Positions 10,642 through 64,000 of a stretch of DNA of 64,000 bases are shown here, one piece after another. The stretch spans positions 620,001 to 684,000 of the forward strand of contig CDRNVI010000030.1 of NCBI GenBank assembly GCA_977017575.1, written 5' to 3'. A program made the translations under genes and the position numbers. The notes under the pieces are model-generated. The model worked only from the letters and a program-made list of their open reading frames with translations, made no database searches and was not told the DNA's origin. Origin of the DNA: Paramoeba atlantica (taxonomy: Eukaryota > Protista > Discosea). Each line of letters opens with the position of its first letter. Positions within the stretch are counted from its first letter, which is position 1.

Positions 10642-12860
10642 CATACCCCTGCCGGGTCGATGGGTAATTACCCATTAGCGGGTCTGTGCGGGTAAATTAC
10701 CCGGGTCTGTGACCCAGTTACCCGCACCGACCCACACAGACACGCATCGGCGCACTAGCCATTAAATACAAAATAATTTCCTCTCAAGTGTGCTGATTTG
10801 TAGGATTGGCACGGAATGCTCTATGTACAGAAACGGTATCTTTAGCGTTGAGGAATTCCTTCCATAAGAAGAATTCCCTCTACTGATTTGCTTGTGTCGC
10901 CCATCTATTTTTTTTATTTTTTTTTTGGTGTGAACCCCCTAGGCCAACAAGAAGCCTACCCCTAACACCGCAATGGTACCAATTTTCTTTATTTTTTTTT
11001 GGCCAGTCGAGTTTACCCTCGAGTCCTAGCAACTAAGGTGAAACTATAAAGAATCACCACATAGAAAACATTTAGAGGGCTGAAACCAGTAAAATGCAAA
11101 CCCAGGCAAACCCAGTCAGGTCCCAAGAGAAACCAATGGCAAAGGTACTTGGCGTTTTTTCGGCTATGGTGTTCGCTGGAGGATCCGGGTGGGGGTTCCC
11201 GGGGGTGGAAGGCGGGTCCAGGTGGGGGGTGCAGGGAGACTAGTTCGAGGTCCATGCAAATCGTACGAAATTATCATTGCTTTCAGTGTCAACTACTAAT
11301 ATCAATCTGTCCATACATACATGTACATGGCTACTAAATGTGACTGCTTCATTCACCTTGCTTAAATTCCGAAAGAGCTTGACGATTAAGCCGTTCGCTT
11401 TTTTTCCTTCGTTCCTGCTGATCAATTCTTTTCTGAATTCTTATTTCAGAATCTCTGTCCTTTATCTCGCTCTTCGTCAATCTCTCATACGTAGTTTTTC
11501 CTTTTAACCCGTGTGCAGGACATTTACCAGGGCGCACTCCGACCATATGAACTAGTAGTTTAGTATGATCGCGATACTTTTTGATATACGCTTGATCTTC
11601 TTTATCATCCTTATGAAACTTACAGGAGCAGAAACTTCGTGTCTTCCACTCAGCGACTCGCGAATCACTTTCCTTTAAGTGTTCCACGGAATCGGGGTAA
11701 AGATTTGGATTTTCGACTTCCCAGTGAATGCACTCAGCGTTCCATAGCAAGCCAAAGAATGAACGTAGAACGTGCTTCTTATGGCGATTGTTATAGAAAA
11801 GTTGATGCTGCTTTAAGCGAGCAATGAAGCGTTCGACTATGTTTCGGATCCTACGAAACTCCATGTCATAGGCTTCCTCTATGTTGGATCCGATTTCCTG
11901 ACAAAGACAGTGTCGAACATTTGGTTCTCGCACGGTATAACGTCTTTCCGTTCTTGCCAAGTTTCCAACCCGATCAGAAGCCTTTAAGACAGGAAGAACA
12001 TTCTTTTTCCACACCCATGTAGGGGGTGTGGAACTTCACAATAGTGGTGCCACTTCTTTAAATTTGATTCCGGAAGGTCTCTTTTTATCTTTGTTCCAGG
12101 TACATCAGGGCGTAAATCCTCGTACTTATGCACGAGCCAGAAAAACCGACTAGAAGAAAGATTCGTTAGGGTCTGTAAGCATGGCAGTACTTTTCCTACG
12201 AAGCGCTGTACAATTACTCCCTGATTGTTCGCACTCGCCACCTGTGCCAATCGGGAATTTTCAAGAGATCTTGAGCACTCGCGGCGATGCTTGTGATACA
12301 CATTTTTATAACGAGAGTGAGATTCAAAAGCGCATCCTTCCTTGGTACATATGAAATGAAGCTTTTGGCCCAAAGGATCGGTGAGAATATCTGTGTGCGT
12401 GGGTGCTTCCGGGAGGACAGCGCACGAGCACGAATTGCCCAGATAAGGATTCTACAGTCATTTTGTGCCGTATAGTATCGCGATGCTTCATTTTTTTTGA
12501 CTCAGGGGTATTACCATCGTCAGTATCAGATGAAGAAAATAATTCAGGCGTGCTAGGTGTCTGCTCTAATCGTCGTTGACGAGCCATGAGTACAGATAAG
12601 TTTAAGTAAGAAGAGATTAGTTAGTGCGATCAAACACAAGAGTAATATGATTATTGATTTCTTACTTAGCCTTAAAACACTTCACCATAAGGTCCGAAAC
12701 AAAGATGCACGTTTATTTCCCGATGACAAGATACAACAAACAGATGTATACATGTATATGTAGCTTTCTAAGACGACCTGTCAATGCGGGTCGGTGCGGG
12801 TCGGTGCGGGTAACTGGGTCGCAGGCCCGGGTAATTACCCATTTACCCGGCAGGGGTATG
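10642..12860 (-). mobile_element. DNA transposon with CATACCCCTGCCGGGT TIRs and 6-bp TSD (TACAAA); degenerate DDE_Tnp_4-like transposase
   Basis: TSD at 10636-10641 and 12861-12866. ORF fragments 11349-12587 contain a C2HC finger (CTKEGC...KHRREC) and RNIVERFIARLK, a PIF/Harbinger/ISL2EU-type third catalytic motif. Confidence 0.85.
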
Positions 12861-13040
12861 TACAAAGGATATGTTTACGATATTAGGGACTTAATGATAC
12901 TACTATATTAGCGGAATTCTATACGAACGGCTTAACGTTCGTCAAAGGGTTTGATGTTATGGACGTTCAAATGGTCTTGTACACTAAATGAAACCAGTAC
13001 TACTACTCTTGTACATCTTATTGATAGGATATAGTCCGGC

Positions 13041-14810
13041 ATGTACATCCCTCTTCTGTCGGGAAATAGTCATGACATTGGACAGAGAGCATCGTATCGA
13101 GGGAGCATTAATAATCCTTCTACACCTTTAGATAAATTAGTTAATGTGAAGGGGGCTATCCTTAAGACATCTGAGGACAAGTCAACCGGAACAGTCATCG
13201 CAATGCCCGTCGTTTGTCAAGCCCTGTAACTACTCCAGGAAGATCCTGTTTCGGAAGATAGATTTGAAGATCTGTGTATTTCGCGTCCCGCCAACACAAA
13301 GTGGGCAGCTCATCTAAAATACCTTTGGGACGTAGGTGTTTTTGATCCCTACGTCCACGTGGCTGGGTCCCGGGGGCCGATATTGAGTCGTTATTTCGGA
13401 GTAAATAAAACAGAAAACTTGGCACGAGCTATTTTTGATCCCCGCGAATTAAACAGCATGTCGAGCAACTCCACGATAGCATTTTCATTATTAAATATCG
13501 AAGATATGCTTCAAGTTTTGAGCTCAACCGATACTTCTCTTTGTCGTCTCAGGGCAATACATTTTGACATAAGAAACGCATACTATCAAATTCCAATTGG
13601 AATAGCCTTACGGCGACGTTGCTGTGTTCGTCTGGGAAATATTGTCCTACAGGCCTGTGTTTTGCCAATGGGTTATTCTAAAGCGTGCGGCATATGCCAG
13701 GCGCTTGTCTGGGGAGTGTTAATCAAGCTTACACATGCCGAGCGAGTTGAGCTTCATGTACCGGAAGAAGTCCTATCATGGAAGGAAGCACCAAGCGTTT
13801 TACGCTTGGAAGATGGAGGCTACATTATAGTAGTATACGATTCAGTTTGTATGCACGTCTCTGCCTCTTGCCAGAAACGTTGGGAACTAGTATTGAAGCG
13901 CAATTTTATATCTCGTGCAAAAATGCATCTAAAATATATTAAGTCAGAATCGACTTGTTCTGTGTTCAATTTTTGCGGCATATCTATCCAGCAATCCTCC
14001 GTGGGACTGTCTTGGTCTATAGAGAATTCATCGCTTGAAAAATGGCAGGCGGCTGCTAAGTTTCCAGTTCGCCCAACCCCACGTACATATTTTAGTTTTC
14101 TTGGATTCGTACGCTTCGCTCTCCCTTTGTTTCGTCTTCCTAAGAGAACTTTAGGAAGATACACGAAATTGCAAAGTGTTTTGGGAAAAATCGATCCAAA
14201 TTGGGACCGAGAGGATTCTCGCATTATTGTATTGCTCGGGGGTCTTGTAGACTTGATTCTATCTTTTAAAAGGGTATGGTCCTACGCGGGTTCGTTCAAC
14301 TCATTCACAAAGAATGGCTTTGATTTAATTGCTTGCGATGCGACGCCTTTTCGATGGGCGGAATGGACCTTAACAAGGGAAGATGTAGTTCAAGAAAAAC
14401 TGGAGGGTAGTTTTGCGAAAGAAATTCGGATTGAGAGTGCCGAAACTTACGCGCTTCACAAAGGAATTGAAGCGGCGCTCCGCAGAAAGTCAAAAGCTAT
14501 AGCAGTTTCGACGGACAATACAGTAGCAGGTCGTTCTCTGGAACGCGGCTATTCAAGATCAGAAGAAGTAGACAATATTGTTCGTAGTATATGTCAAAGC
14601 TTGGAGGGCTGTAACGCCTCCCTCACAGTTGCTGATTTACGCACTACCGACAACATTGCTGACGTCGGAAATAGGCCGCATAAAGAATATCACTTTTTGG
14701 ATGAATCCTCTCGAATGGATTCAACGGTTAAAGCATTAGATGCTGCTATTCATGACTATCTTAGATATGGTAGGACGTATCTAAGCAGGTGTGACCTTGA
14801 ACACAGTTAG
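13041..14810 (+). pseudogene. Reverse transcriptase plus DIRS-type RNase H (5' part disrupted; main ORF 13359-14810)
   Basis: HFDIRNAYYQ, LPMG, and VVYDS at the RT catalytic position. RNase H motifs CDAT, E, TDNT and NIAD. Confidence 0.85.
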
Positions 14811-15517: not shown

Positions 15518-16421
15518 TTGCGGTGGTTGTAAAACTACCGCTCTACACTCGATTATTGAAAAAAAAGTGAACAAAAACAGTGAAAATATATAATAGAGGA
15601 ACACAGTAATATAATAGAAGAAAAAAATATAAAAGGGGGCTCCGGTGGTCCAAAACTGAAAAAAAAATTTGAAAAAAATGGGGGGTCCATGGGGGGGTCC
15701 AGGGGGGGGTCCAGGGGGGGGGGCATGGTCGAGCAAATTTTTTCGAAAAAATTAGTTTTCGAAAAAAAACCGGAGAAAGGGTAGCCGGGGTCTTGGCGCG
15801 CATTTTCCACCCCCCTACCCGGGGGTGACCCCCCCGCGTATCCGCAGGACGGGTCCGCCAAGTTCGGATTTTTTCGGAAAAATTTTTTTGAAAAAAAGTT
15901 CAACTTGGCGGAAAAAATGGTAAAAAAATATTTTTCCAAGATCGTTTCCCCTATTGTATTTTGATAGTTTGGGACCTACACTAGCTTTCTACGCAGTTGT
16001 TTTCGCAAGGTATCACTTCTTCGAACTGTGGTGCGCCCCCCAAAATGACCCATTTTTGACTAAAAAAGGTGAAAAAGTATTTTTCGGACCTAAAGGGGCA
16101 TTTTTGTGTCGAAAAAATGGTATGGTTGGAGTCTCATTCTCTACCCAATACGTTCGGGAGGCTTTCATTCATGCCTGCGAGTGATTTCCCACGCGCAAAT
16201 GTCGGATTTAGTGCTCTGAGAGCAAATCTACGCGAAAATCACCCCATTTTTACCCGAAATTCGGCTATTTTTGGGCATAATCTTTCCGTTTTCCAGGCTA
16301 AATTTTCTTTTTTAGGCTCTTCGTTAAACGCGGCGGTAGTTTTCAACGCGAAGCGCGCAGCATGAGTGACTTCTAAGTTGAAAGCAACCACCGCGTTTAA
16401 CGAAGAGCCTAAAAAAGAAAA
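15518..16421 (+). repeat. Repeat A, full copy
   Basis: Starts TTGCGGTGGTTGTAAAACTACCGC (small hairpin), has poly-G tracts and ends in a ~117-nt hairpin. At least 15 copies or fragments in the window. Confidence 0.92.
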
Positions 16422-16459
16422 TATAAAAATTAATGATCCCGTATAAATGACCGCTATTC

Positions 16460-16650
16460 CAAAAAAAGGTCGGCTTTAGTACGATCTGTAAGATGGTAGT
16501 GCCAGGGAAGACCGCGAGTAGGTCCCGACCATGCTTCCCCATGCTGTTTTTTTTCAGTGAATCGCGTTTTACAAAAATCAGTATCTTCATCTCAGAAAGA
16601 AAATCCCCCCCAAAAAGATTGTCTTTTCCCCTACATGTGCATTTTTTCAC
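16460..16650. repeat. Diverged fragment of the 48842/63263 element family
   Basis: AAGGTCGGC.TTAGTAC.ATCTG...GGGAAGACCGCGAG.AGGTCCCGACCATGCTTCCCCATGCTG is shared with 49020-49100. Confidence 0.7.
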
Positions 16651-19366: not shown

Positions 19367-21788
19367 TTGCGGTGGTTGTATAGCTACCGCTCTACCCTCG
19401 ATTATTGCCAAAAAAAGTGAACAAAAACAGTGAAAATATAAAGGGGAACACAGTAATACATAGCTTGGACTAGTAAACTAGTAATTACTAAAAGTAGTAA
19501 ACAGGCTAGTAATTACTACTAGTAATTACTAAAGTTACTACTTTTTTGGTCACGTACTTTTGGTCAGATTTAGGTAACATGTTAAGCTTTGGAAGAGCTC
19601 TACTTTACAGAAACGGTATTTTTATTGTTGTGGAGACTGAATATCACCATCCTCCATTCATCTGAATATCTCAATACTATTCTCAACATTAATATTTCAA
19701 TATTGATGTGTACTACAAAACATACTCCAAAACGTAAGCTCCGATAAATAAACTGATATCAATTTTTAAACTTAGTCATTCTGTTCACATGGGGGAAAAC
19801 AAAGCGATTGAATAGAGCCCACGGAAAAAATCCACATGAAAACAGAAGCAAAACTCGTAAGCACAATCGAGCACATAATTTAATTTTTACCAGCTCCGAA
19901 AATGACATGCTCGCCCAAGTTCAAAGTCCGTCCTGCATATCTCGCACAATGATGCAAAAAGAAAAAATGATGATAATTCAAAATCGAGGGTTCGCCCAAG
20001 TTCGAAATCCTTCGTACAGTTTGCGCACAATAGAGTAATGCAAATAAGAGTTCTACAAAACCCGTAAATTACCTCGAAGAAACATCTGCGTTGACACAAC
20101 GTCAGTACCAATAGAAGCTTGGCGAGCTGAGTACTTGTGACCTAATATGGAGAGTATAGAGTCACAGCCACAAAGTAGCCTTTGTGCTTGGGGTGGTAAA
20201 TCGGGGGCAGTACGAAATGCTTACGACCAACGTACAAAATCGCAATCAGGACATGCTCATGTAATACGGTATCAACCCCACCATCCACTGCCATGCCAAA
20301 AAACGTTGCTCGATCAAGCTGTTCATTGACCAAGGCCCACACCTTGTCGGCGACGCGGCGTTCGTAGCGGTGAAACACCTTCGCACTAGGTGTTGCGTCG
20401 ATGACATCCTTTGAAACTATTTTCGAGGGGCGGAGAGCTTCATATTCTGCAACGAACTTAAGGAAAGCATCCGTCGACAGACTATGTTTCGCGGCAAGAC
20501 GTGGCCAATCAATTTGTACAAACTGCTGGACTTGGGCTTTCTGTGATTTCGCATCTACTTGTGCGTCGTTGTCGCTGATTGCGCCTGTGCAAGTCTTTAA
20601 GTGCTTATAGCACAATGCTTCAATCCTACTGTGTGTTATAAAAGAGCATTGCGTACATTTCACGTGTCTAGCGTGACCCATGCTGTCGCATTTAATGGTG
20701 TTGACGGGGTTTTCGGCATTTTTTACGGCCCAAGCTTCACATCCTTTTTCAGCGCATGTGAAGTCACATCTCTCATAAACCAAGATGTTTTGATTTCTGA
20801 GAGAATCGAACGATAGGGGGTCATTTCCAATATTGCTTCTTCCTCTACGAGGGCGAGGAGAATCCTGGATCAACGCATTTTCCGCGTTAACCGCTATTTG
20901 TGTTGGAGTTGTTTCTAGTCGCTCCATTACGGCAGCCGCGTTTTCTCGATGAGCTTGCGCAGTGGCGTTCCTGCGTCTTCGAGTGTTCGGGGGAGAAGGG
21001 TACTCGATCGGACTTTTCATTTTGTGAAAAAGTGCTGGAGCTTAAAATAAGTTTAGAACGTCAAATAATGAGGATGTCACGTACATTCTATTTTCTTCGC
21101 ACTAAATTATTTAATACAATGTATATTTAAAATATACATTGTATGCAAAATTTACGTGTGGGAAAAAAGTAGTAATTACTACTTTTTAAGTAGTAACTTT
21201 AGTAACTACTATAGTAATTACTAGTTTACTAGTCTAAGCTATGGTAATATAATAGAAGAAAAAAATATAAAATATTAGATATGGGATCGGGTGGTCCAGA
21301 ATTGCAAAAAATAGAGGGTCCATGGGGGGGTCCAGGGGGGGGGCATACGTCGTTTTTTGAAATTTGCAAACTCTCGATTTTCGAAATCGAGCGCTGGGGT
21401 CCGACAAGGTGAAAATTTCCGAAATGTTTGGGGTGACCAAAAAAAACATTTTTTTGACCCAAAAAAGAGTAGAAATATTAATTTTACAAAATCGTGTCCT
21501 AAAACGTATTTTAAGAGTTTGGGACCTCAGCTACCATTTTACGACGTTTTTGTCGACAGATTCGACTCCTGCTCCTACTGGTAATACATCAAAAACGGCC
21601 CAAATTCGGTTTGAAATTTCGCAATTTTCGCCGAATAATCCAGCTTTTTCACCCAAAAAAATAGATTATTCATCTAATCCCCATCTATCTTAAGCCGATT
21701 TTTCTTTTTCAGGCTCTTCGTTAAACGCGGTGGTAGTTTACAACGCGAAGCGCGCAGCATGAGTGACTTCTAAGTTGAAAACAACCAC
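19367..21788 (+). repeat. Diverged Repeat A copy (19367-19458 plus 21244-21788), head-to-tail with the preceding copy and split by a transposon
   Basis: Begins 5 nt after the previous copy's hairpin. Consensus CACAGTAATATAATAG is restored on removing the insertion. Confidence 0.75.
19459..21243 (-). mobile_element. DNA transposon with CATAGCTT TIRs (~80 bp, TAGTAATTAC-rich) and 6-bp TSD (GTAATA); truncated hAT-like transposase (20142-21020)
   Basis: TSD at 19453-19458 and 21244-21249. The ORF has a C2HC finger (CTQC...KHLKTC) and FFGMAVDGGVD...VLIAILY, resembling the first catalytic Asp motif of hAT/DUF4371 proteins. Confidence 0.8.
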
Positions 21789-30531: not shown

Positions 30532-31206
30532 TTTATAAGGGCTTAAAATAAAAAAAGCAAAGCGTAAAAATAAAAAGAAATAGAGATACCGTGACCCCCC
30601 CTTAGTTATCTGTCATTTTTGGTCCAAAATTTTTTTGATAAGTAGCGTACGTATCGAAAAAACTGCTCAAAGGGATGACTTATCCAAAAATCTCTGATCT
30701 CGAAATTTAGTAATCTGCTGGGGTCTTCAAGTTTTTTTTAGCACCACATGCTGCAGCATCAGTGAGTATGAATATACGAAACCCTTATACGCTCACAGTT
30801 GGGCCTTGCTCGCAAACGGGGACTTTTGCCTCCAGAAGTGGGCTTCGCTGACAGTTGGGCCTTGCTCGCAGACGGGGGCGTTGATTGCAGACTTGGGCTT
30901 CGCTGACAGAACGCACTGCCCGTTCGATGAATTTTCATCGAATGCCCCCCCTGCCCCGCACCCTCAGGGGAGACACCCCATTACAGGGTACTCGCTCCCT
31001 ACACACTCTCTGCACCATCCTATATAATAAATCCTAATAAAATCCTAATAAAATGTCGGCATGGGTTTCGCGCTGCAGCTCCTATAAATTTCGAACACTC
31101 ATTCAGATGAGTGGCTGCGGGTGGGGAGGTTTCACGAGGTTTCACCCGTAGCCCCTCAGATATGCAAAAGGAAAAAGAAATAAAAAATACAAAAAAATGC
31201 GAATAA

Positions 31207-42628: not shown

Positions 42629-42747
42629 CATACCCTGGGCTTAGCTCCGAGTAATTTACTCGGCATGAATCAATGATGCTTAATTTACTAAACTACATAC
42701 CCATTTAACATACCCCCCCGGTATGTTATCAAGGTATAGGTATGTTA

Positions 42748-43588: not shown

Positions 43589-44734
43589 CTGTGCCCCCCC
43601 ACTTATTTGTCACCACTTTTTCAAAAAAAGGACAATTAAGTGGGGGAGGTCAATTTATTTGGTTAGATGAAACAAAAGTCCCAAACTTTTTTCATTATTT
43701 TAGGAATCTCCAATGCGTTCGGATAAAGTTGGCTTTACAGAAACGGTATCTTTATCGAATGAGTAGTTTTTCTACCTTTCCCGTACTAGTAAAGTTTATA
43801 GTAGTAGTAGTTTCTTTTGTCAAACCGCTATAAGGTATGGGGTTTGATAGAGCACCGACTCGTGGGGCAGGAGGCCATATTGTAACCCAAGCATCAAGGC
43901 GGCATGGGCGAGACGACCGGGATGGTGGTGGGAAATGACTGTTCGCAGTGAAGGAAGAAGGGAGTGGTGGTGGTGGGGAATGGTTGTTCGCAGGGAGGAT
44001 TCCAAAATTTTACAGGCGTACTGGAAAGAACCAAAACCATTCTGCGAAAGTCTGAAGGCCAATTTTGGGGAGTTGAATACGAATGGAAGAAGGACATTCT
44101 TTTTTGGCGAGTTCGTAGTGAAACGGTCTCATCGCGGGTGACACCAAAGTCTACTTATGATGACTTTACTGTTCGTACGGCAGTACGCTGGCTTGCCTTT
44201 GGGTACTCAGAATCGCACGCAAACCGCTGTATGAAGTTGATTATGCTATGGAACTCCTCTTCGAATGTACAAGTCAGGCGCATGTCCATAATTGGGATTC
44301 AAGATTATCTAGCGTACTTCTCTTGCAATGGAACACTGGAAAATCGGATATTTTCCGATTGGCCATAAACCGAACCTGGAACCAAGCCAGCAAACCGCGC
44401 ACAACAGGAGTAACTCTTTATACTTCCACAGACGCGTCACTCTTCCACTCTGTGGAAGAGGTGGACTAAGTTTCAAAGAAAAAAAAACGTAGCTAGGTAT
44501 AGCGTATTGTGATATGAAAAACTTGAAGTAGAAAGTATATACAAACAATACTACTTACTGACACCGGGTTCTGATACACTGTATGTATGAGGTTCGTAGG
44601 GAAAAATTGCCCCCCCCCCCCCCCCAAAAAAAAAAATTCCGGCGCCGCTTCGCGGCGCCTCCTGCCCAGTCTCGTCAAAAAGGACAATTACGTGGGGGGG
44701 GGGGGGACTACGACAAATAAGTGGGGGGGCACAG
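43589..44734. mobile_element. Non-autonomous DNA transposon, perfect 23-bp TIRs, TA TSD
   Basis: CTGTGCCCCCCCACTTATTTGTC and its reverse complement at 44712-44734. TA on both sides. No recognisable transposase. Confidence 0.8.
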
Positions 44735-46000: not shown

Positions 46001-46997
46001 TTGCGGTGGTTGTATAACTACCGCCCTACCCTCGATTATTGAAAAAAAGTGAACAAAAACAGTGAAAATATAAAGTGAAACACAGTAATAAATATTTTAT
46101 AATAGAAGAAAAAATTGTAAAAGGGGGCTCCGGTGGTCTAAAATTGAAAAAAAAAATTGAAAAAAATGGGGGGTCTATGGGGGGGTCTAGGGGGGGGCAT
46201 ACCGCACGATTTTTTTTTTGAAAAAATTATTTTTCGAAAATAATCCGCAGAAGGGGTAGCCAGGGTCTTGGCGCGCATTTTCCACCCCCATACCCGGGGG
46301 TGACCCCCCTGCGTATCCGCAGGACGGATCCGTCAACTTCGGATTTTTTCGGAAAAAAAAAATTAAAAAAAATTTCAACTTGGCGAAAAAAATGGCAAAA
46401 AAATTATTTTTCCAAAATCTTTTCCGGTGTTGTATTTTGAGAGTTTGGGACCTATACTATTGAATAGGTAATATACTATTGTATTTACTATACTATTGTA
46501 TTTAATATAGGTAATATACTATTGTATTTTGATAATTTGGGACCTACACTAGCTTTCTCCGCAGTTGTTTTCGCAAGGTATCCCTTCTTCGAACCGTGGT
46601 GCGCCACTCAAAATGACCCATTTTTGACTAAAAAAGGTGAAAAAGTATTTTTCGGACCTAAAGGGGCATTTTTGTGTCGAAAGAATGGTATGGTTGGAGT
46701 TGCATTCTCTACCCAATACGTTCGGTAGGCTTCATTCATGCCTACTAGTGATTTCCCACGCGGAAATGTCGGATTTAGTGCTTTCAGAGCAAAAATACCC
46801 AAAAATCACCCGATTTTTACCCGAAATTCGACTATTTTTGGCTATAATCTTTCCGTTTTGGTCAATTTTCCAGGCCAAATTTTCTTTTTAAGGCTCTTCG
46901 TTAAACGCGGTGGTAGTTTTCAACGCGAAGAGCGCAGCATGAGTGACTTCTAAGTTGAAAACAACCACCGCGTTTAAAGCGAAGAGCCTAAAGAAAA
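46001..46997 (+). repeat. Repeat A, full copy with internal duplication and filler at ~46430-46545
   Basis: Both ends present. GTATTTTGA.A.TTTGGGACCTA is duplicated around AT-rich filler. Confidence 0.9.
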
Positions 46998-48620: not shown

Positions 48621-48841
48621 TGCCGAATATAGAAGAAGAGGACAATGAAAGTGAAACAGAAGAGGAACAATGTGAGCAATTTATGGAAGAGGAGGAAGAA
48701 GCAGCAACGGAGGCAGAAGACACAGAAACATGGAACATGATCCAGAGTTTCATGAATCTGTGAAGGAATGTGTGAAGTGAGTGGGGTTTTAAGGAGTGTT
48801 GTTAAGTTAAAGAGTGTTGTTAAGTTAAGAAGTGTGAATTA

Positions 48842-49575
48842 CAGTGCTCGAAAAAATTAGCAAAACATTTATTGTAAAATAGTAAAAAAGTTTTACTAAT
48901 TAAAAATTCACTAATTTTTGTTTTACTAATTTTTGCACTGCCCCAAAAAATTTGCCAACTTGATAAAATCAATTTTTACAGAAACGGTATTTCTGTCGCT
49001 TGAGTAGGCTGCCTCCTCTAAGGTCGGCGTTAGTACCATCTGCAAAATGGTAATGCTAGGGAAGACCGCGAGGAGGTCCCGACCATGCTTCCCCATGCTG
49101 AGTGTGTCAGGCTTCAGTGAAGCGTATTACAAAGAAAATCCTTACAAAGAATATTCCCCCAAAAGGGATTGACTTTTACCCCCTCCCATACAATGTCCCT
49201 ACATGAGTATTTTCTTAAATATGAAAAAAATCTCTTAAATACAAGAGAGCGATGTTTCGCGTTCGCGGAGCGGAGAAAGTCTTTTAAAAATAGGAGTATA
49301 ACGAACAAGAAAGTCGGAGATTCAGAAAAAAATCAGGAGCGGGGAAAGTAACATGTGTCTGTAGCACAGAGTAAAAAACACCCCCAAAAAATAATATTAA
49401 TAAAAATCTTGCTCACAGAAATCTTGCTCGCTTTCGTGCGACATAATCTGAATAATAGTAATCTGAAAACGTTTCGTAAAAAAAGATAGAATTCCGAAAA
49501 AAACAAAAAAATGTAAGGTGTAAAACCTGAATTTTGCAAAATGTTTTACTAATTAAGAATTTACTAATTTTTAAA
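48842..49575. mobile_element. Non-coding element starting TA|CAGTGCTCG, near-identical to 63263-64000
   Basis: ~730 bp direct match with few substitutions. Tc1/mariner-like left end. No inverted right end seen. Confidence 0.75.
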
Positions 49576-50445
49576 ATATTAATTAAGAATAACATAAATT
49601 AAGGTAACTTTTTTTTGGCACATAATTATTACCTTAATTTCTGGTACCTTAATTATTATTTGGAGCTCATATTTCCGATGTCGATATCCTTCGAAACTTG
49701 AATAAAATTTAGTTGAAAGTACCTACAACACCTTTGACCAGATGAGTTAGAATATTAGTCCATACAGAATATAGTCCATGCGTAGAATCATCATTCGGAA
49801 TTAGAACATTAGATAACACACCTTTAAACTCGCGCACCTGTGTATTTAAGTAAGCAATGTTCAGCCTGGTTTAGCCCAAATACGTGTAAGTTGGTAGTAG
49901 CATTCACATTACTCTGGTTAGCTCGCGTTTTAAACATGCCTACCTTGTACGATTTTTGAATGCACGCTGATAGATTCTAAGTTGAAAATAACCACCGCCT
50001 TTCACGAAGCGACTAGAATAGAAATTAATTATTACAGCAGATTTTCGGAAAAATGAGTGACACATAATTATTACCTTACTTTCTGGTACCTTAATTTTAA
50101 TTACCTTAATAAGTGTTTTGACGGTAGGATTTATGGTGAAGACGTGGTCAATTTTTATGATTTTCATAATTATTTGTGACAGAAGTGAAGTCCTAAGGAA
50201 GTTTGTACTCGAAAATATGGTATAAAACAAAGTTTTGTGTTAAAAAATGAAGTTACGTCTGAAAAATGTATGATCAGGTTTTTTTATGTTTTTTTTAGGA
50301 ATGGGTGCAATATAACCCGTCTGTAGCCAAAAAATGAGAATGCGTCTCTGAATGACCACGTCAACGTGCAACTCCATTTGAATACCAAAAATGAGAATGA
50401 CCAAAAAAGTTCCATACAGCTTCTGCACTTCCTCTTTATACCTAA

Positions 50446-51024
50446 AGGGGGGGCTCGTTTATTGTTAACATTTTTTTCGAGCATTTTTTGCTAACAATAA
50501 TCGAATGTTAACAATAATCGAACTTTTACCCCCCAATGTTAACATTATACGAGTTGCAATGAAAGTTCGAATATTGTTAACAATGAGGAGTATTTGGGCA
50601 CTCTCTGGAGGTCACTGAAGGTCACTGGCAATCGCCAGAGCTACTAACGACTCTCCAATGACACCTCTTTAGGGAACTGCGCAGTTTTCAATTGCCATAC
50701 AGTTTCATACAAAACTGAGTTATGCGAATCGAAGTGCGATGTCGGGTGAGGTACCGTTTACTTGCCTTCTCAACGTTTTATCTCTGGAGGCTGCCATCGT
50801 CGGGCGACTGAAAGTTGTTTCAATAACATAGTTTCGAATATCGTTAAGCGCATCATTTTTCTTATCATGAACGCTATAAAACATGACCATAGGGAACAAA
50901 AAAATTCAAAAGCCACACGAAAAAACCGAAATTAATTCATTGTTAACAATAATCGAATGTTAACAATAAATGAATTTATTGATTGTTAACAATAATCGAA
51001 TGGTAACAATAAACGAGCCCCCCT
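50446..51024. mobile_element. MITE with AGGGGGGCTCGTTTATTGTTA TIRs (Kolobok-like ends; CTAA/TTAA flanks)
   Basis: Inverted termini plus subterminal TGTTAACAATAATCGAA repeats. Confidence 0.7.
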
Positions 51025-51142
51025 TTAATATTACTCCCCCTATCCTAGAGTTGCCTCGTTTGCCTTCAGTGAAAAGGGGTACCGTTGCTGAGACTGGAAA
51101 AGAATTAATTATAGCTGACAAAAAGTTCTTATTGAATGATCG

Positions 51143-53335
51143 CTAATGCGTTGCCAATGTGATGTCTGTGGAAAGCAACATAAAGAAAAATGACGGAAAA
51201 GTGGACGTTTTCGAGTTATTCGACGAGTCCAGTCGCAAATCAGTGAAACCTTTGAACATAATTTTAGAGAAAGAAGCAACCACAGCTTCCACTATGGATC
51301 TGTCCGTGTCCTTATCATTACCCAACAAATACTTCAGATATGACACGACATGCAGAAAACTATGGTAATTTACCTTTGGGAGCAGGGAAAGGACACGAAC
51401 ATATTCAGTTGGATGACTTTCTGAAAAAAGGTGCTGATAAAAAAGCGGTACAATTGGATCTTGTAGTGAACTTAAAAAATGGACAAAAATGGAAGCAATT
51501 GTTTTTGCGTCACAAGTTGCTAGAGCGGCAAAGTTTCCACAATCCAGGTCGTAAAAGAAAGGATTCAATGTGTCGATATGATCAATTGTTTCAAAATCAG
51601 CGAAACGAACATTTGTAGTATAAAGGCAATTAATTAAGTGCCAGAGTTCCTTTACGGAGTAAAATTCATGTGAAAATTCGGTCTTTCTCAGATTCCTAAA
51701 TCCCTCGATACATGAAGTAAGTCCTAAGGAGTGAATGTTATCTAAAGTGTTGCCGAAACAAGAGGGATACAAATAAGCAGAAGCCAGAATATGTTTCGGA
51801 GGCCCATAAGAGGGTTGCAAGACGATGCATTTGCTTATTAAAAAGCGCTCAACGCCACAAAAGGGTGGATAGTGCTTTTGAAATTGCAGGCTTTCTGTAT
51901 CTATTATGGCTTCAAAAGTAAATGAAACCTCTTCAGAAGGAAATATAATTCTTTCCAATGGAGTAACAGAAAGCCATTCGGATTGAATCAAAGGTGTATG
52001 GGCATTAAAGGGCGGTATTTCCGTGGAAGATGCCGGATACTCAAAGCGATAAGCGTTAACTTTGATAACTGAATGCCCCAAGTTCCTTGCAAGAACTATC
52101 ATTTTCTTTTTTGCACCGTAGAACAACTTTTCGAACAGAACTGTATGTGTGTTTAGTTGCAGACCAGGAACAATTACGTTATCATAGCCCTGAGAATCAA
52201 TTTGCTTTCTAAGAGACTGAATCACTATGCTCCGTTTGCGGGGCACTTCCTTTAGAACTGAAAGGGAAAAAACTGCTGACAAAGGCTTGTGATCACTGCA
52301 TTTGATGTCACTGAAAGTATTTACTTGACGCAATTGAACCATGCACCCTAAAGACGAATTTCGAACAGCGGTGTTACGCACCCACCACAAAATACGATCT
52401 GTATAGGCCGGAACTCTTTTCTTTTCGGATGAATCAAAAGTAGAAGAGCCTGGATCATAACGGTACGTAGGAGGAAAATTTGGTGTAGCTTCTGAAAAAT
52501 TAGTCCAGCAAGAGCAACGAGAAGCTAGCTGCTCATGCAGTTGGTCTTTTTCCATCAAAAGATCCCAACGTTTTTGCTTAACAAGTAGAGAAGCTTGCTC
52601 CTGAGTATATCCTTGGACACGATAATTCAAATCTCCGAAAACAAGAAGAATGTCATGATCCTTCGGTAGAACAGGACATCCAGAATTACTGCTCTCTACA
52701 ACGAGGCTCTGCAAAATAGACTCGAAGTCGCGGTTCCTTTTGTTCACCTCGCTTACATGTGCGGCTAAGTGCAAGTTTACGAAAAGTATCGAAGTGCGAT
52801 GAATAACGAGTCGAATGCCGATGGCACCTTTGTTTCCTAAAGTGCCCATCATTGAACCGGTAGCAAGCGTTGTGACTTGTACATCTTTCACGGAATTCTT
52901 TAAAGAGTTGTGTGCAAATACAGCCAGATAAAGTCCAACCATTTGTTTGGATGTTAGCAACTCGTATTCAGCTTGCTTTTTAAAAGCAGCTGATCTGGTG
53001 TAGGAGGTAAGCAAGTTGGTCCAATACAAGGATGCGTCCGTTTCATTGCGCACCAATGCTTGAGGACTCATATCAATTTCTTGCAAACCAACAACAAGGA
53101 GCGCAGGGTTCGATTCAATTCGAAGCCACGAGCTAAGATCCTCAGTCGTCCGGCGCTCATTGACATTAAATGTACACACCACAATAGGTATTTCAATTCG
53201 CTTGGTAAAATTTATGTAGTAGTAGTCCAATTGCTCCGTAATCCATTCCTGGGCGCTCTTAGGTAAACCCCGCTCATCACCAGAGAAAATTGGAGGTAAA
53301 ATTTTAGACATACATGTACATAGGAAAACCATCAC
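51143..53335 (-). CDS. Inositol polyphosphate 5-phosphatase, OCRL/INPP5B-like (5-phosphatase, ASH, RhoGAP-like)
   Basis: TFNVN, GLQEID, GNKGAI, FGDLNYR, PPTYRYD, PAYTDRILW, SDHKP, then a C-terminal RhoGAP-like helical region (FLSSLQDPIVP). Confidence 0.9.
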   Translation of the reverse strand: MMVFLCTCMSKILPPIFSGDERGLPKSAQEWITEQLDYYYINFTKRIEIPIVVCTFNVNERRTTEDLSSWLRIESNPALLVVGLQEIDMSPQALVRNETDASLYWTNLLTSYTRSAAFKKQAEYELLTSKQMVGLYLAVFAHNSLKNSVKDVQVTTLATGSMMGTLGNKGAIGIRLVIHRTSILFVNLHLAAHVSEVNKRNRDFESILQSLVVESSNSGCPVLPKDHDILLVFGDLNYRVQGYTQEQASLLVKQKRWDLLMEKDQLHEQLASRCSCWTNFSEATPNFPPTYRYDPGSSTFDSSEKKRVPAYTDRILWWVRNTAVRNSSLGCMVQLRQVNTFSDIKCSDHKPLSAVFSLSVLKEVPRKRSIVIQSLRKQIDSQGYDNVIVPGLQLNTHTVLFEKLFYGAKKKMIVLARNLGHSVIKVNAYRFEYPASSTEIPPFNAHTPLIQSEWLSVTPLERIIFPSEEVSFTFEAIIDTESLQFQKHYPPFCGVERFLISKCIVLQPSYGPPKHILASAYLYPSCFGNTLDNIHSLGLTSCIEGFRNLRKTEFSHEFYSVKELWHLINCLYTTNVRFADFETIDHIDTLNPFFYDLDCGNFAALATCDAKTIASIFVHFLSSLQDPIVPLFYQHLFSESHPTEYVRVLSLLPKVNYHSFLHVVSYLKYLLGNDKDTDRSIVEAVVASFSKIMFKGFTDLRLDSSNNSKTSTFPSFFFMLLSTDITLATH

Positions 53336-54020
53336 ATGGCTTCATTGAAAATAAAGAGAAACACAGTAGTGCCGTGACGAACATACAGTGGTAATTACGT
53401 TGAAGGTAATAGCATACCCCCGCGCGCATTAGTTACATAGTATTTTGGCCTATTTTACTAATAGGTGATATGTATTTAATAAGTGACTTTTTAATTTCTC
53501 GTAACTAACAAGTGATTTTTCAAGACGTCGAATTTGAACTTTATGAGTTATGAGTAAAAGTGTTTCACAGAACTTTTGACGATACCTTGTCCCCCCGATC
53601 TTGCTTTAAATGTGCAGTAATCAGCTTACTGAATTACTGGTCGAACAAAAAATTTGACATTTTTTTCGAGTGATGATTGTTAACGAGGTCAACAACGTGC
53701 GCAGGGTAAACATCTTGATCAAGGGTTTGCTGCACCCATTCAACAGACTGAGACATTACAAGAGAACAAAAAAAGAAGTGTCGCTTGGAAAAAGCAAAAT
53801 TTTCTAATGACTTGTTCTGAACTTTGAAAATGACCGACAATAAAGTCAAAAAGTATTTTGGTCCGCCGCGGAAGGAAAAATAAAGTCGGACCAATATTTA
53901 TGTTGACCAAATTTATTGGGGCCCAATAAAAGTGGACCAAATTTTCTGCTCGGACGGTATTATGCTTCTTATAATCATATTATTTATTAGCAGAATAACA
54001 AGTTCGTTCGATTCTTCGTC

Positions 54021-54413
54021 TCACCTGAGAACAGAAAAGCGAGAAAATTCGGTCTCAAACAAGCTCAAAAATGTAGTCAATTCTGCTATAGCACAATCCG
54101 CAGCTTGAAGAAGTGCCTCCTTGGGCCCACCACTTTTTTCAGTATCCCTTACAATAGTTTGGACCTTTAGTAGAACCTTGTGCTCAATGGGATGCTGTAC
54201 CTTGTAAGCTGAAAAGGCAACTGAGTTATCATCATTTAATCGCATTCGAAGTAAATTTGCTAACGTATGATCTTCTTTGTTAATCACAACATTGAGCGTA
54301 CTGGGCATTTTGTCATCAACAGCAATACTTACCTTAGGACCATCCTCCGGCATATCTACATTTGTTCCGCGCGGGAGGAAATTAAATGGAATACGTTCTG
54401 CGTGTACACTCAT
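54021..54413 (-). CDS. RPB11: RNA polymerase II subunit RPB11
   Basis: DDKMP...INKEDHTLANLL...YKVQHPIEHK...VQT fits RPB11 better than the AC19 paralog. Confidence 0.85.
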   Translation of the reverse strand: MSVHAERIPFNFLPRGTNVDMPEDGPKVSIAVDDKMPSTLNVVINKEDHTLANLLRMRLNDDNSVAFSAYKVQHPIEHKVLLKVQTIVRDTEKSGGPKEALLQAADCAIAELTTFLSLFETEFSRFSVLR

Positions 54414-54798
54414 GTGAAAATGGACTCAATAAGAATTTTGAATGAAAAGTTTGATGTGTATATCACTGTATTACTCTAAAATACAGGAAATGTAGCTCGA
54501 AAACTCCTCTGAAGGGAAAAAAATAGAAAGAAACGAGGGTGAAGATGACACGTGGAGCATGCTACAACAGCTCATCTTGTAAAACGAAAGGGAATAAACC
54601 GAAAAATCAGGTTATAGTTTAGAAAAAAGACGAAAAGAAAAATATTGTGAAAGTGGATACTATACGTTCGTTGTCTGCACCGGTAATCTTATTTTCCTAA
54701 ATTGAACTAAAGTTAACAATTTTATAGTAACTCCCTGAGAGTCAGACCTGAACCCCTGTACGTATTGGGAACAGAGAAAAAGATTCGAAGTTGAAAGA

Positions 54799-55749
54799 TT
54801 AAGGTTTGTGATAGTTTTGAATAGATTTGGTGCTGCTTACCGTGAATGAAGAGCGCATATTTCCAGCGGTTTTCTCAAGGCAAGGAGAACCACTACGATC
54901 TTTGACAGAGGTCTGGTTTAGTGTATTAAAGGCGAATTTTGATTCCTGTTTTTCGATGATACGGTTCTTTACAAAAAAACGCTCTTTTGGTTTCGAAGGT
55001 TTCTCATCTGTTTTTTTTACGGATCGAAGACTCTTTTGTACTGAAGTTTCGCGTGGCGCTATAGACTCTCCATGTTTTTTTTCTCCATCGAGTGTTTTAT
55101 TTGATAACTTTACAGATTTTTTGGATTCAGGAACTTTTTTCGTTTTCTTTGTGTTCTCTTTTGCCTTTTTTCTTTCTCTGGAAAATTTGAATTTTACGCT
55201 TTGCTTCCTAAATACGCGCTCTAAAACGTCTTGAACCAGTACTGTCACTTGTTTTTCATTTTCTTCTGATATTTTTGTTTCTAGCCACTCCACAACATTT
55301 CGGGGGATTGGAGAAAGAGCAGGGTCAGCGCTTCGCACAAAAGTCTTGTAATGTGTCTCATTCGATATATTGCTAGTCACAGGACGAAAAGGAGTGATTG
55401 TAGCTTGTACGGGAGCGTATTCGATATAGAGGTTGTGCGGTGTCCCCTTCTTGTCATACACTATGACCCCATTGAGACGAGTTGCCAGAGAGCGAATTGC
55501 AGTTTCAGAATTCATGTACACCAATGCGTATGAGTATCGAAGCGGTTTATGTTCATTTGACGGCGAATGTCCGGCAACAAAGTGATGCCAAGTTACTTGA
55601 GCTCGTTGGTCACCAATAAGCTTGACAAATTCCTTCTCTTTCATGTCTGGCGGAAGGTGTCTTACGGTAATTTTTAAAGACAGACATTCCCGCGACATTA
55701 AAGCGACAAAGTAAAGAATCAGGGGATAACCTACGATTGGTGGGAACAA
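54799..55749 (-). CDS. UPF3: Smg-4/UPF3-family nonsense-mediated decay factor
   Basis: KITVRHLPP, YSYALV, IEYAP.Q RRM-like signature and HYKTF, followed by a basic low-complexity tail. Confidence 0.75.
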   Translation of the reverse strand: MFPPIVGYPLILYFVALMSRECLSLKITVRHLPPDMKEKEFVKLIGDQRAQVTWHHFVAGHSPSNEHKPLRYSYALVYMNSETAIRSLATRLNGVIVYDKKGTPHNLYIEYAPVQATITPFRPVTSNISNETHYKTFVRSADPALSPIPRNVVEWLETKISEENEKQVTVLVQDVLERVFRKQSVKFKFSRERKKAKENTKKTKKVPESKKSVKLSNKTLDGEKKHGESIAPRETSVQKSLRSVKKTDEKPSKPKERFFVKNRIIEKQESKFAFNTLNQTSVKDRSGSPCLEKTAGNMRSSFTVSSTKSIQNYHKP

Positions 55750-56700: not shown

Positions 56701-56915
56701 ACTTCTTATTACGCGGCTAGTTCTCATTTAACCCTGCTAAACCGGTCCAAAGCCCGGGGTCACCATCTGTTGTGTTTCACATCAGTGGTAAAAATGGGGA
56801 TGGAAGGAGGATTACGAATATTGCAGGGCAGAAAAAGAGAGGTGGGGGGTTGAGGCGTCCGACTATGGGCTTTGACCAGCAGGGTTAAAGGAGAACTAGC
56901 CGCGTAATAGGAAGT
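56701..56915. mobile_element. MITE with 38-bp TIRs
   Basis: ACTTC(T/C)TATTACGCGGCTAGTTCTC(A/C)TTTAACCCTGCT is inverted at both ends. No clear TSD. Confidence 0.75.
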
Positions 56916-57732: not shown

Positions 57733-58615
57733 ATGCACAGTACACCGAGTTATTTACGAAAGATTGCCATTGAAAAACTTGAAAACGGATCTGCACTTCG
57801 TGGAGTGGCCGCCGATTTAAACTTAAGCGTAGGAAATGTCAGCCGCATTATAAATAAATATCTTCCATCGCTATCTAGACAACCAACCGGTCGCCCACGT
57901 AAGCTGAGTGATACTTGCCGTAGGCGCGTCCGCCTTCTTATCACTAGCGGCGCCACAAAAGACGCAGTTGCCGCCAGCAAAAGGTTGAGAGACGAAGGTA
58001 TTGCGGATGTTTGCCCGGAAACCATTCGGGTTTCCCTTCGTAAGTGTGGTATGAAGGGAAAGAAGAGGGTCAAGAAGCCCTACCTTACGAAACGTCACAA
58101 GGCTCTACGTCTTGCTTTTGCAAGAAAGTACGAGCATTGGACGCACGCCGACTGGGGACGTGTACTTTTCACGGATGAAACGAAGATCTGCCGTTTCGAG
58201 TCGAATGGTAGCCGGTGGGTTTGGGTAGACTTTGGGGAGGAGCTGTCTGAGCGAAACACACAAGGTACGCTCAAGTATGGTGGCGGCTCCATCATGATAT
58301 GGGGTTGCATGATGGGGCACGGTGTGGGAACCATTGAGCTGGTTCACGGGAATATGAACGCCGAGCAGTACGTTCAAATACTGCAACAAAATTTGCCCCC
58401 TTCCCTACAAAAGCTGAGTGTCACGAAGGATTGGATCGTCTTCCAACAGGATAACGATCCGAAGCACACGAGTAAGAAGGCTCGCGATTTTTTAAATTCG
58501 CAGGAGCTGTGTGTGCTTGACTGGCCCCCTCAGTCTCCCGACTTAAACCCCATAGAAAACCTATGGGTTGAACTGAAAAAGGCAACGGCAGATTACCCCG
58601 ACCCACCCGCAGGAA
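57733..58615 (+). CDS. Tc1-family DD34E transposase, C-terminally truncated and read through to 58713
   Basis: VLFTDETK, GGSIMIWG, FQQDNDPKH, WPPQSPDLNPIENLW. Confidence 0.92.
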
Positions 58616-58619
58616 TGAT

Positions 58620-59824
58620 TTATCCCCCGTTTTTTTCTCGAAGAAGTCTGATTCGGGACGGGAAGCTCGTCAAAGTATTATTATACGATGCTTTCATATC
58701 AGATAATAGATAATCAAACGCTTTTGGAATTGCAGCTTGTAGTTCCTTACGGTTTGTTGGGCGGAGAGTAAATTTTATGTGGTGAGCCATCATGCTCCAC
58801 AAATTTTCAATTAAATTTAAATCCGGCGACTTGGCAGGCCAATCAGGAATGCTGATACCCATGTCTCTGCCGACGCGGCGAGCGTTTGAATGGGAACCCC
58901 CCATTCAAGGCTCACCGCCATCCAAATATGAACCCCCTTTCCTCCGAAATATTTCTCAACATCTTTTGGTACCTCAAGGGGTTCATCTGACCTTTTGCAA
59001 ATGTACCAAATATTGCGTGAGTGGTACCCGCATTTAAAAATCTTTTCATCCGTCCACAGAATACGGGCGTATTGAAAAGGGGTGAACCTCTCCAAACGAT
59101 TTGCCAACTCCAGGCGGTCGAATTTGTGCTGAGGCGTGAGATGAGGAACTTTCCTCATTTTTCTGCTTATGTACCCGCTCCTTTTCAGTGATCTTTTCAC
59201 AGACGAAAGAGAGCATGGGTACTTGGTTTGATCGATCTGGCGGTGAACCCACCTCCAAGATGGACAGCCAATGGGACTACGTTGATTTTCTTCATCTACA
59301 ATAGATTCTAACATTATTCGAAAGTCTTCATTATCAATCGCATTCTTACGTATGTATTTTATACGTTCTAACCCTCCTGTCTCCCGGTGGCGTTTAACCC
59401 ATCGAGAGACAGTTACTTCACTGCATTTCATAAGAGCAGCAGTGTCTGTAATCGAACGTCCCTGGTTTTGTACCTCATGGACGCAAATTACACGTGTTTC
59501 ATAAGTGATTTGTTGCGTCGAGAGGGTGCGCCTCTGGCGGCGAAGTGTTTTCGGCATAAAAGATGTGTTAGAAAGAGTTAAGTGGTATTTTATTCATAGA
59601 TTAATGGGCTAAAATGATAAAAAATGATAAAAATCTGATTTTTTGCAGAATTTTCAGGTAAAAAATTCAGTAAAATTTTATCATGACGTCATATCAGCTT
59701 CAGGGGCGGCAACAATGGTGCCAGTAGTCTTAAAATTTCGAGATCTGTTGAATGCCGAAGGAATTAGGTCAAAAGCTCGCACGGTACAAATTTTAGACCC
59801 CCCACTTTTTTCGTGATCCCCCTG
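58620..59824 (-). mobile_element. Second Tc1-family element, internally deleted transposase, left TIR CAGGGGGATCACG at 59824
   Basis: ILWTDEK, VHIWMAVS, then a shifted frame with WPAKSPDLNLIENLW. TA at 59825-59826. Confidence 0.85.
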
Positions 59825-62161: not shown

Positions 62162-62760
62162 CATACCCTGGAGTTTACCCGTAGTGATTCACTACACGGG
62201 GTTAGCTCACTACATTTATGTAGTGAATCACTACTTTTGGTTCACCACATTAGTTCACAATGAGTCCAATGCGGAATTTCCTTGTACTGAAATAATAGCT
62301 CTTCGTCGTGACAATCGGTCCTTGATTAACTCTACAGCCGTTTACAGACCCCGTATCTTTACCATTTTGCGGACCATTGCACGCATTTTGTCTTTGATTT
62401 GAACCTCCAAACTCTTTTTTTATTTGTTTTTGGCCAGTCGAGTTTTCATCGAGTCCCAGCAAAATAAAAAACAAGTAATAGTACAAGAAAACAAAACGAG
62501 TCATAGTACGAAACTATGGGAAATCTGAACAGGGGAAGATAGAGACGGACTCCGTTGCCAATATTTTCCACGTCCAGACTCCCAACTGGGGAAACCCGTT
62601 CATAAAGTTTTTTTAATTCTTTTTGTGTTGCAGCACGGGCGACATGGTTGACCGGGCAACCATTCCTCCTGCCCCACAGTCGGTGCTCTATAAAACCCCA
62701 TACCTTATAGCGGTTTGATAAAAGAAAACCCAAGTACATTGCCGCCCGAGAAAAAAATTA
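62162..62760. mobile_element. End of an element related to 10642-12860 (CATACCC terminus); right limit approximate
   Basis: Starts CATACCCTGG. TTTTGGCCAGTCGAGTTT...CGAGTCC.AGCAA is shared with ~10995-11032. Confidence 0.55.
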
Positions 62761-63262
62761 TAACACACAATCATTTAACTACTCAACAGAAGCTGGCTCT
62801 ATGTCAATCTGATGAGTCGAATCCGATGAGAAGCTCGGCGAAAAATACTCGGTAAGTGTTCGCGCGGTTTCCAGGATCAAGAAGGGTGCAGCTTTTTTTC
62901 AAGCCATTGTGAATAATGGCGGTAGACGAAAAAAAAGAGAAAGGGGCTTTAACTACGAGCGGCAACATACAGTGAAAAAAGTTGACAAAGATGTTACTGA
63001 TCTAATTGAAAAACACAAGGTGATATTAAAAGAAATAGTTTTTGACAACATAGAACGCCACGGAGTGTTTAGAGGTAATTTGTCGGAGAGAAGGAAAGAA
63101 CACATAAACCCCCCGCAGTCAAAAGTCACCCCACCTAACTTTTCAGCCAAGTGTCCGTTTGAACTGATTTTTGTTGCATTTTGCAGATCTCAACACAAAG
63201 GCTTTGCGCGCTAAAAACCGGAATCAAAAAAATTATTCATGATAGTTTATATTTAACATTTA

Positions 63263-64000
63263 CAGTGCTCGCAAAAATTAGTAAAACTTTTATTGTAAAA
63301 TAGTAAAAAAGTTTTACTAATTAAAAATTCACTAATTTTTGTTTTACTAATTTTTGCACTGCCACAAAAAATTTGCCAACTTGATAAAATCAATTTTTAC
63401 AGAAACGGTATTTCTGTCGCTTGAGTAGGCTGCCTCCTCTAAGGTCGGCGTTAGTACCATCTGCAAAATGGTAATGCTAGGGAAGACCGCGAGGAGGTCC
63501 CGACCATGCTTCCCCATGCTGAGTGTGTCAGGCTTCAGTGAAGCGTATTACAAAGAAAATCCTTACAAAGAATATTCCCCCAAAAGGGATTGACTTTTAC
63601 CCCCTCCCATACAATGTCCCTACATGAGTATTTTCTTAAATATGAAAAAAATCTCTTAAATACAAGAGAGCGATGTTTCGCGTTCGCGGAGCGGAGAAAG
63701 TCTTTTAAAAATAGGAGTATAACGAACAAGAAAGTCGGAGATTCAGAAAAAAATCAGGAGCGGGGAAAGTAACATGTGTCTGTAGCACAGAGTAAAAAAC
63801 ACCCCCAAAAAATAATATTAATAAAAATCTTGCTCACAGAAATCTTGCTCGCTTTCGTGCGACATAATCTGAATAATAGTAATCTGAAAACGTTTCGTAA
63901 AAAAAGATAGAATTCCGAAAAAAACAAAAAAATGTAAGGTGTAAAACCTGAATTTTGCAAAATGTTTTACTAATTAAAAATTTACTAATTTTTGTTTTAC
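63263..64000. mobile_element. Copy of the 48842 element, running off the window end
   Basis: Near-identical direct repeat. Confidence 0.8.

Follow-up and report, generated by a model that had tools for sequence, protein, structure and literature searches.

A conserved mimic of the spliced-leader exon marks one end of several DNA transposon lineages in a kinetoplastid

Introduction

We analysed a 64-kb stretch of DNA (contig CDRNVI010000030.1, positions 620,001 to 684,000; hereafter the window) that harbors several DNA transposons, and confirm that a conserved mimic of the exon of the spliced leader (SL) marks one end of several of their lineages. This motif, hereafter the cassette, lies just inside one terminus of six elements of the window, named A to F, and of two further elements, G and H, located elsewhere in the same assembly. 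Protein comparisons indicate that the host of these elements is a kinetoplastid, probably an early-branching one: the mitochondrial HSP70 encoded beside one of the loci is 88% identical to the EukProt protein of PhF_6, which we take to be a free-living prokinetoplastid, versus 74-78% to trypanosomatid proteins and 69% to a Diplonema protein.

We know of no account of how DNA transposons manage where gene-specific promoters are almost absent and a single leader heads every mRNA. To our knowledge, the block ACAGTTTCTGTAC is invariant in the known kinetoplastid and diplonemid SLs, and no reader of this block is known to us. The literature searched contained no description of an SL-mimic cassette in DNA transposons. 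DNA transposons themselves, according to the open literature searched, were first reported in kinetoplastids in 2021 (PMC8101967).

Materials and methods

In addition to the window, about 145 kb of other DNA from the same assembly (ENA ERZ24900291) was included, so that 209 kb were examined in total. The additional DNA consists of eight independent loci (designated by L numbers) reached via paralogues of the protein of element B and via a Tc1-like protein; picked through transposon proteins, these loci are a non-random sample of the genome. Sequencing reads were considered over positions 48801-54800 of the window (6,000 letters), all runs consisting of assembled contigs; one run, guessed to be RNA, covered 54733-54800 (68 bases).

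Sequence and position of the cassette

The core of the motif is a 14-mer, ATACCGTTTCTGTA on the minus strand (TACAGAAACGGTAT on the plus strand), of which the window contains five exact copies starting at plus-strand coordinates 10826, 19606, 43736, 48977 and 63398. All five copies listed in an initial annotation of the window are thus exact, and the degenerate copy that it also reported, in element F (62341-62368), was recovered with a profile built from the copies (E 8e-5). When up to two mismatches were allowed, six matches to the core were found in the window against 0.33 expected, a number reached by none of 100 shuffles. The sixth match, on the opposite strand at 42756, reads ATACAGTTTCTGTA, the canonical kinetoplastid form, with A in place of the cassette's C; it runs on as ...CCTTGTTG, followed by GT.

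At full length, the cassette is an SL-exon mimic of about 30 nt with the consensus CTCAA(A)CGATAAAGATACCGTTTCTGTAAA, spanning roughly SL positions 3-33, that is, nearly the whole exon minus its first few and its last eight bases. Its derivation from the SL, as had been proposed, is supported by cassette C, the longest copy, which agrees with an SL exon copy of the window (42748-42769) at 21 of 22 positions. Cassette C is also the only one with an AACTA start, the others reading CTCAA, CACAA or CTAGG. The SL's A is replaced by C in all seven strong cassettes, as had been observed for every intact copy, and this change disrupts a small palindrome of the SL, TACAG/CTGTA. The match to the SL stops at CTGTA, usually followed by A's (runs of 0-6), and no target-site duplication (TSD) was seen around the cassette. 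The TTG|GT donor is gone from every copy, as initially described; the GT itself, however, is present, every copy having kept GTA where the motif ends.

From the left terminus to the start of the core, the distance is 184, 147, 147, 135, 135 and 181 bp in elements A to F, respectively, and the core is always on the minus strand. Cassettes G and H, on other contigs, both carry the C and both point outward. Altogether, each of the seven independent strong copies in the 209 kb has an identified terminus 135-239 bp away and is directed out of its element (7/7), so that the placement initially described for the window, just inside the left end and at a fixed place and orientation in several families with terminal inverted repeats (TIRs), holds and is reproduced outside it. 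No strong profile hit was found away from a terminus in the 209 kb, and none of the elements had a cassette at its opposite end according to the profile, each carrying a single one.

Carrier elements

The carriers belong to three lineages, with CATA...TATG ends and 6-bp duplications, with TA duplications and poly-C ends, and with TA duplications and CAGTGCTCG ends. Element A (10642-12860, minus strand; CATA...TATG ends, TSD TACAAA) contains broken minus-strand open reading frames (ORFs), among which a C-terminal ORF of 221 aa gives a weak DDE_Tnp_4 hit, below threshold, in Pfam; its cassette (10825-10852, minus strand; profile E 4e-7) is composed of CTCAACGCTAAAG, the exact core and CA. Element B (19459-21243, minus strand; CATA...TATG ends, TSD GTAATA) has a 292-aa zinc-finger ORF on the minus strand, and its cassette (19604-19631, minus strand), a profile hit with the exact core, is also present in the second assembly copy, L001. 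The zinc-finger regions of A and B share 35% protein identity (E 5e-13, B protein against the 129-aa ORF of A). The carriers, initially presented as unrelated, are thus not all so, since A and B are homologous and only three lineages are represented. The remaining ORFs of both A and B lie on the minus strand, upstream of the motif, which bears out the statement that the motif lies downstream of the transposase, on the same strand, where one is present. With respect to the CATA-type transposase class, Pfam returned nothing above threshold for B, P0002-P0004 and P0278. P0100 was discarded, as it belongs to another assembly (ERZ26859043) and is devoid of any SL-like sequence.

Element F, for which a putative left terminus (62162-62200, CATACCC...) was delineated, has the end type of A and a 49-nt inner block in common with it. 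Its cassette (62341-62368, minus strand) is decayed, with 4 of the 14 core positions changed, and a terminus and inverted-repeat search found no right end. The assertion that all carriers are TIR elements has to be corrected for F, whose right end was not found, and for D, whose right end is incomplete.

Element C (43589-44734) is non-coding and is bounded by a TA TSD and a perfect 26-nt TIR, CTGTGCCCCCCC..., the ends of its group reading TA|CTGT(G/A)..CCCCCCC; its cassette lies at 43734-43768 on the minus strand. A 64-nt unit inside C (43800-43880, minus strand) recurs with 95% identity beside F (62665-62727, plus strand), a small repeat shuffled among elements.

Elements D and E form the third group. 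Element D (48842-50124) is a 1283-bp insertion with a TA TSD and the left end CAGTGCTCG, and its cassette (48975-49004, minus strand), a profile hit, has the exact core. In contigs of three read sets of the same organism (X1, X2 and X4), position 48839 abuts 50125, with two letters in common and a depth near single copy at the joint, and this joint reveals an empty allele; D is therefore polymorphic and a real mobile unit. It is a recent insertion, despite a right end from which the outermost ~17 nt of the inverted repeat are missing. A 262-bp segment of D (48965-49226), flanked by AAAAT, comprises the cassette and a repeat, R1; a 48964-to-49227 joint corresponds to its absence. R1 is about 180 bp long, starts on the plus strand with AAGGTCGGC and adjoins the cassette in both D and E; it also occurs at 16466-16645, there without a cassette, and has no tRNA or Rfam match. 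Element E (63263-64000) is a second D-family insertion, 99.3% identical to D over 731 bp, with TA preceding its terminus and a body that extends past the window edge; its cassette (63396-63425, minus strand) is likewise a profile hit with the exact core.

Outside the window, outward-pointing cassette G (L003 4519-4548) lies 239 bp inside a TA|CTGTGATCCCCCCCCC terminus, and outward-pointing cassette H (L021 1627-1652) is found 155 bp from the terminus, TA|CTGTACCCCCCCCC, of an element of about 842 bp. Both ends of the latter were seen, with TA on both sides and no cassette at the opposite end. A TA duplication, as in Tc1/mariner-like TIR elements, thus flanks C, D and H. These three, like E and G, are non-coding, and neither G nor E showed its right end. 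No autonomous partner, which in this class would have a DD(E/D) transposase of the DDE_3 type, emerged for the non-coding TA elements.

A metagenome scan with the 19-mer TAAAGATACCGTTTCTGTA returned 16 loci with unrelated flanks, none with an SL-like 5' part, i.e. chance hits only. These loci came mostly from two groups of low-GC contigs, with common flanks within each group. The scan provides no cross-species evidence either way.

Comparison with genuine spliced-leader copies

The 209 kb contain three genuine SL copies, at 42748-42782 in the window (plus strand), at 16892-16916 in L021 and at 12903-12926 in L004, which lie outside the cassette system and serve as comparators. In each of them the variable position is A, the ...CTGTACCTTGTTG end is complete and a retroelement-like insert follows as the body that the copy heads; the SL as read from them is ...AACGATAAAGAT(T)ACAGTTTCTGTACCTTGTTG. 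The window has the full SL end only at 42761-42777, with a genuine GT donor at 42778. This donor-bearing copy heads an insert of about 800 bp (42706-43575) bracketed by a direct repeat of about 38 bp (TAACATACCCCCCCGGTATGTTATC...), and element C is inserted directly after the second copy of that repeat. The genuine copies are not identical to one another: that of L021 and that of the window differ by GATTACAG versus GATACAG and by CGAT versus CAAT, which may point to heterogeneity of the SL, or of its gene copies, in this host. A literature search with SL strings returned trypanosomatid SLs only, and found neither the C-version nor the ...CCTTGTTG end.

Every cassette differs from every such relic in three respects: C for A, an end at CTGTA, and A's in place of the CC that follows it. 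Slamovits and Keeling reportedly described, in 2008, relic SLs in dinoflagellate DNA that arose from retroposed trans-spliced mRNAs. Such relics have in common with the cassettes that they are DNA copies of the SL exon outside an SL RNA gene. They differ in that they retain the true SL in full, through to the final base, and open a retro-copy at its 5' end, whereas the cassettes show a fixed substitution and no longer have the last 8 nt, reside near one end of DNA transposons and are conserved amid unconserved flanks. The cassette is therefore probably not an ordinary relic of a retroposed trans-spliced RNA, given the C in 7/7 copies and the missing last 8 nt, where true relics have A and the full end.

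The copies in L021 and L004 constitute the 33-nt head of an element of about 4.8 kb that encodes a reverse transcriptase (RT) and is flanked by a 10-bp TSD. Locus L002 retains the empty site of this RT element in a B-like DNA transposon, reading ATTCTGAATT|GATAAAGATACC... (7633-7649, minus strand); the occupied sites lie at 12074-12090 and 16892-16916 in L021 and at 8078-8094 and 12903-12926 in L004, all on the minus strand. In L021 and L004 the RT element is inserted exactly at that site, and the target following the TSD is an SL-like 12-mer with the cassette's C, from which SL-like DNA may attract SL-headed cDNAs. The cassettes could accordingly be nothing but target or half-sites of SL-headed or SL-targeted retroelements, a landing pad or recombination leftover that carries no signal for the transposon. 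The exact insertions and the C of the empty site speak for such an origin. Yet all seven cassettes are uninterrupted, and none borders on a retroelement end; the sequence after the cassette is the subterminal sequence proper to each family, with no shared element end; and the fixed distance and orientation find no explanation. We consider this origin very unlikely.

Conservation of the core

Upstream and downstream of the cassette, no between-family pair of flanks aligned better than shuffles, apart from A and F, for which one alignment contained the real 49-nt block and another only an A-run. The subterminal ~200 bp therefore do not align between families as one ancestral segment, the outcome that the initial annotation had named as refuting its interpretation. 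The contrast with the core is sharpest between A and B: their TIRs agree only in CATA, their proteins have diverged to 35% identity, and their cores are identical (14/14). In alignments of the six non-decayed copies, the core shows 2 changes over 84 positions versus 7 over 48 for the eight adjacent SL-like positions, which is the same gradient as in real SLs. The D-family copies vary at 48999, 49009 and 49012, and no difference falls in the core among the best-supported ones listed (there are 112 further ones). The four core changes of F, a broken old element, are as expected once selection stops. Such a pattern would be expected of purifying selection acting in active lineages. Moreover, with the core intact in A and B while their proteins diverged, the reader would not be any of the transposases, which evolve fast and are specific to each family; better candidates would be the SL machinery and a host factor.

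The same data have to be weighed against neutral inheritance, whereby one or a few old SL captures in ancestral elements, for instance as filler DNA during gap repair after excision, were passed on without function. The breakpoints would then lie just inside the ends required in cis, and the shared C would go back to a variant SL as source or to common descent. In non-autonomous elements, abortive gap repair does produce internal deletions and filler DNA there, and we count the position of the cassette in favor of this scenario. An identical C and an identical CTGTA end in all copies fit a single origin, the carriers reduce to three lineages, SL-bearing RNA has very often been written back into DNA in this genome, the SL relics vary too (by the two differences reported above) and the module is missing from many relatives. 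Drift, however, would not leave an identical 14-nt core between unalignable flanks and TIRs and beside proteins of 35% identity, nor does it account for the single orientation, the narrow range of distances or the fact that the adjacent SL-like positions do drift. We regard neutral inheritance as somewhat unlikely.

Candidate functions in transcription and RNA processing

The initial annotation had suggested that the cassette might act as an outward promoter, a cap4/leader signal or an RNA-processing signal. No 8-mer is common to five of the seven upstream regions, and an outward promoter of the SL type is not supported, there being no shared upstream sequence to serve as one. The AACTA start, restricted to copy C, argues against a cap4/leader signal. 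The cassette is likewise probably not a functional SL RNA gene: it lacks the TTG|GT donor, has AACTA only once and no shared upstream motif, and produces no Rfam hit. At a permissive threshold, Rfam gave neither an SL RNA nor any other family at any cassette, and no tRNA was found. The regions downstream of the cassettes show no similarity to the intron-like sequence that follows the genuine donor at 42778.

In a less demanding form, the transposon would encode a small RNA or a variant SL RNA, transcribed outward, with the cassette as its 5' part; this RNA would be either spliced at the kept GTA, yielding a leader of about 30 nt that ends in ...CCGTTTCT and would join ...ATACCGTTTCT to exons, or ended at a T-run. 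The GTA after the core in all copies and the T5+G(G/A) runs found within 160 nt downstream of 4/7 copies, versus 10% of random windows, are in keeping with such a mini-gene, as are a hairpin and a T6GG within 40 nt after the cassette of D. The T-runs, however, are the complement of the CCAAAAAAG motif and occur only in TA-type elements, for which reason they were not counted; that motif resembles the published Tc1 terminal repeat. With no donor, AACTA in copy C only, no shared upstream motif, no similarity to the intron-like sequence and no Rfam hit, a mini-gene is very unlikely as well.

Read on the plus strand, the cassette has the acceptor-like shape (T)nACAG, with a pyrimidine-rich stretch within 70 nt that is weak (P about 0.012), and no plus-strand ORF follows this shape in A or B. 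The three recognisable host genes of the window (encoding a DEAD helicase, an inositol 5-phosphatase and UPF3) are all on the minus strand, so that its six cassettes are in sense with host transcription; cassette G is antisense to its neighbours, which makes this a hint only.

The Rfam hits of the window consisted solely of hairpins resembling miniature inverted-repeat transposable elements (MITEs), which match plant miRNA families, and of two sub-threshold twister hits. The latter are Twister-P1 matches under the gathering score, at 6545-6611 (plus strand, 34.6 bits) and at 56725-56807 (plus strand, 29.8 bits). Long perfect hairpins with low-score plant miRNA hits lie at 16300-16426, 31206-31310, 40533-40667 and 46883-46997, and look like one abundant MITE family.

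Discussion

Several known systems tie mobile elements to host leaders or small RNAs. SLACS, CZAR and CRE are non-LTR retrotransposons inserted within trypanosomatid SL RNA genes; like the carriers described here, they are mobile elements physically tied to SL exon sequence, whereas the carriers are DNA transposons that hold an SL-like piece internally. Outward-reading promoters occur in transposon ends, as in the TIRs of maize Mu1 and the junction promoters of bacterial IS elements, and share with the cassette a directional signal near one terminus that points outward. Unlike them, the cassette mimics a host RNA leader instead of a promoter consensus. A third parallel is provided by the Dada DNA transposons (Kojima and Jurka 2013, PMC3706591): at a fixed distance from the end, they have short subterminal repeats that reproduce part of U6 or U1 exactly. 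Dada elements sit inside the gene that they mimic, bear the repeat in inverted orientation at either end and generate TSDs of 6-7 bp (PMC3706591). Elements A and B resemble them in TSDs of this size and in the mimicry of a small RNA at a fixed distance; the cassette carriers differ in occupying unrelated sites, in having the mimic at one end only and in including elements with TA TSDs. Target mimicry of the Dada kind is improbable, since no SL sequence flanks A, B, C or D and the mimic is not at both ends.

The explanation that we favor, with a probability of roughly 45%, is that the cassette is a selected cis-signal read by the host machinery that recognises the SL. An SL-exon mimic of about 30 nt, with one fixed A-to-C change and with its last 8 nt and the TTG|GT donor lost, forms a cis-module of at least three cut-and-paste lineages, placed at one end only, just internal to the zone of terminal or subterminal repeats, in sense with the transposase where one remains and pointing out of the element. 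Purifying selection would maintain it, and its reader would not co-evolve with each transposase; it could be the SL machinery itself or a host factor that normally recognises the invariant SL block, whether in the DNA of the SL gene or in RNA. The data show that the cassette exists, comes from the SL, is distinct from ordinary SL relics, keeps one place and orientation and is conserved between randomised flanks; that selection acts on it and that its reader is host-encoded are what we infer.

A number of observations weigh against a selected, host-read signal, beginning with the lack of a shared upstream motif and the AACTA start confined to one copy. The one run guessed to be RNA, with its 68 bases at 54733-54800, lies outside D. 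Relatives can do without the module: the 262-bp cassette segment is missing from roughly two D-family copies, which points to dispensability; a B-like element in L002 has no cassette, though its last 75 bp are 79% identical to those of B; and the cassette is absent from the Tc1-like copies with intact genes (L024-L026, and 57.7-59.6 kb of the window, where the gene lies at 57733-58713). Common descent or a common source is the simplest reading of the C and of the end point that all copies share, the cassette may have been acquired independently no more than two or three times, which makes convergence weak, and the sample is small, with seven copies in 209 kb chosen via transposon proteins.

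As to the role of such a signal, our leading guess, at somewhat under even odds, is an end-specific mark on RNA leaving the element, acting at the start of read-out or in processing; next, and less probable, would come a DNA site for a host protein that aids transposition or the accessibility of the end, the remainder going to other roles. The specific proposal that an SL mimic at the downstream end is read by host machinery to start, cap or process the RNA leaving the element is unlikely. If true, the signal could serve, for example, to keep the end active or to reduce polar damage in the host polycistronic unit, and it would represent a new kind of transposon-host interface as well as a handle on the reader of the invariant SL block.

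A near-copy of the invariant block that is kept amid decayed surroundings amounts to a natural experiment pointing at the reader of that block, in which the single tolerated A-to-C change shows which position can vary. Should the cassette prove neutral, it would still mark how SL-bearing nucleic acids enter transposons during repair.

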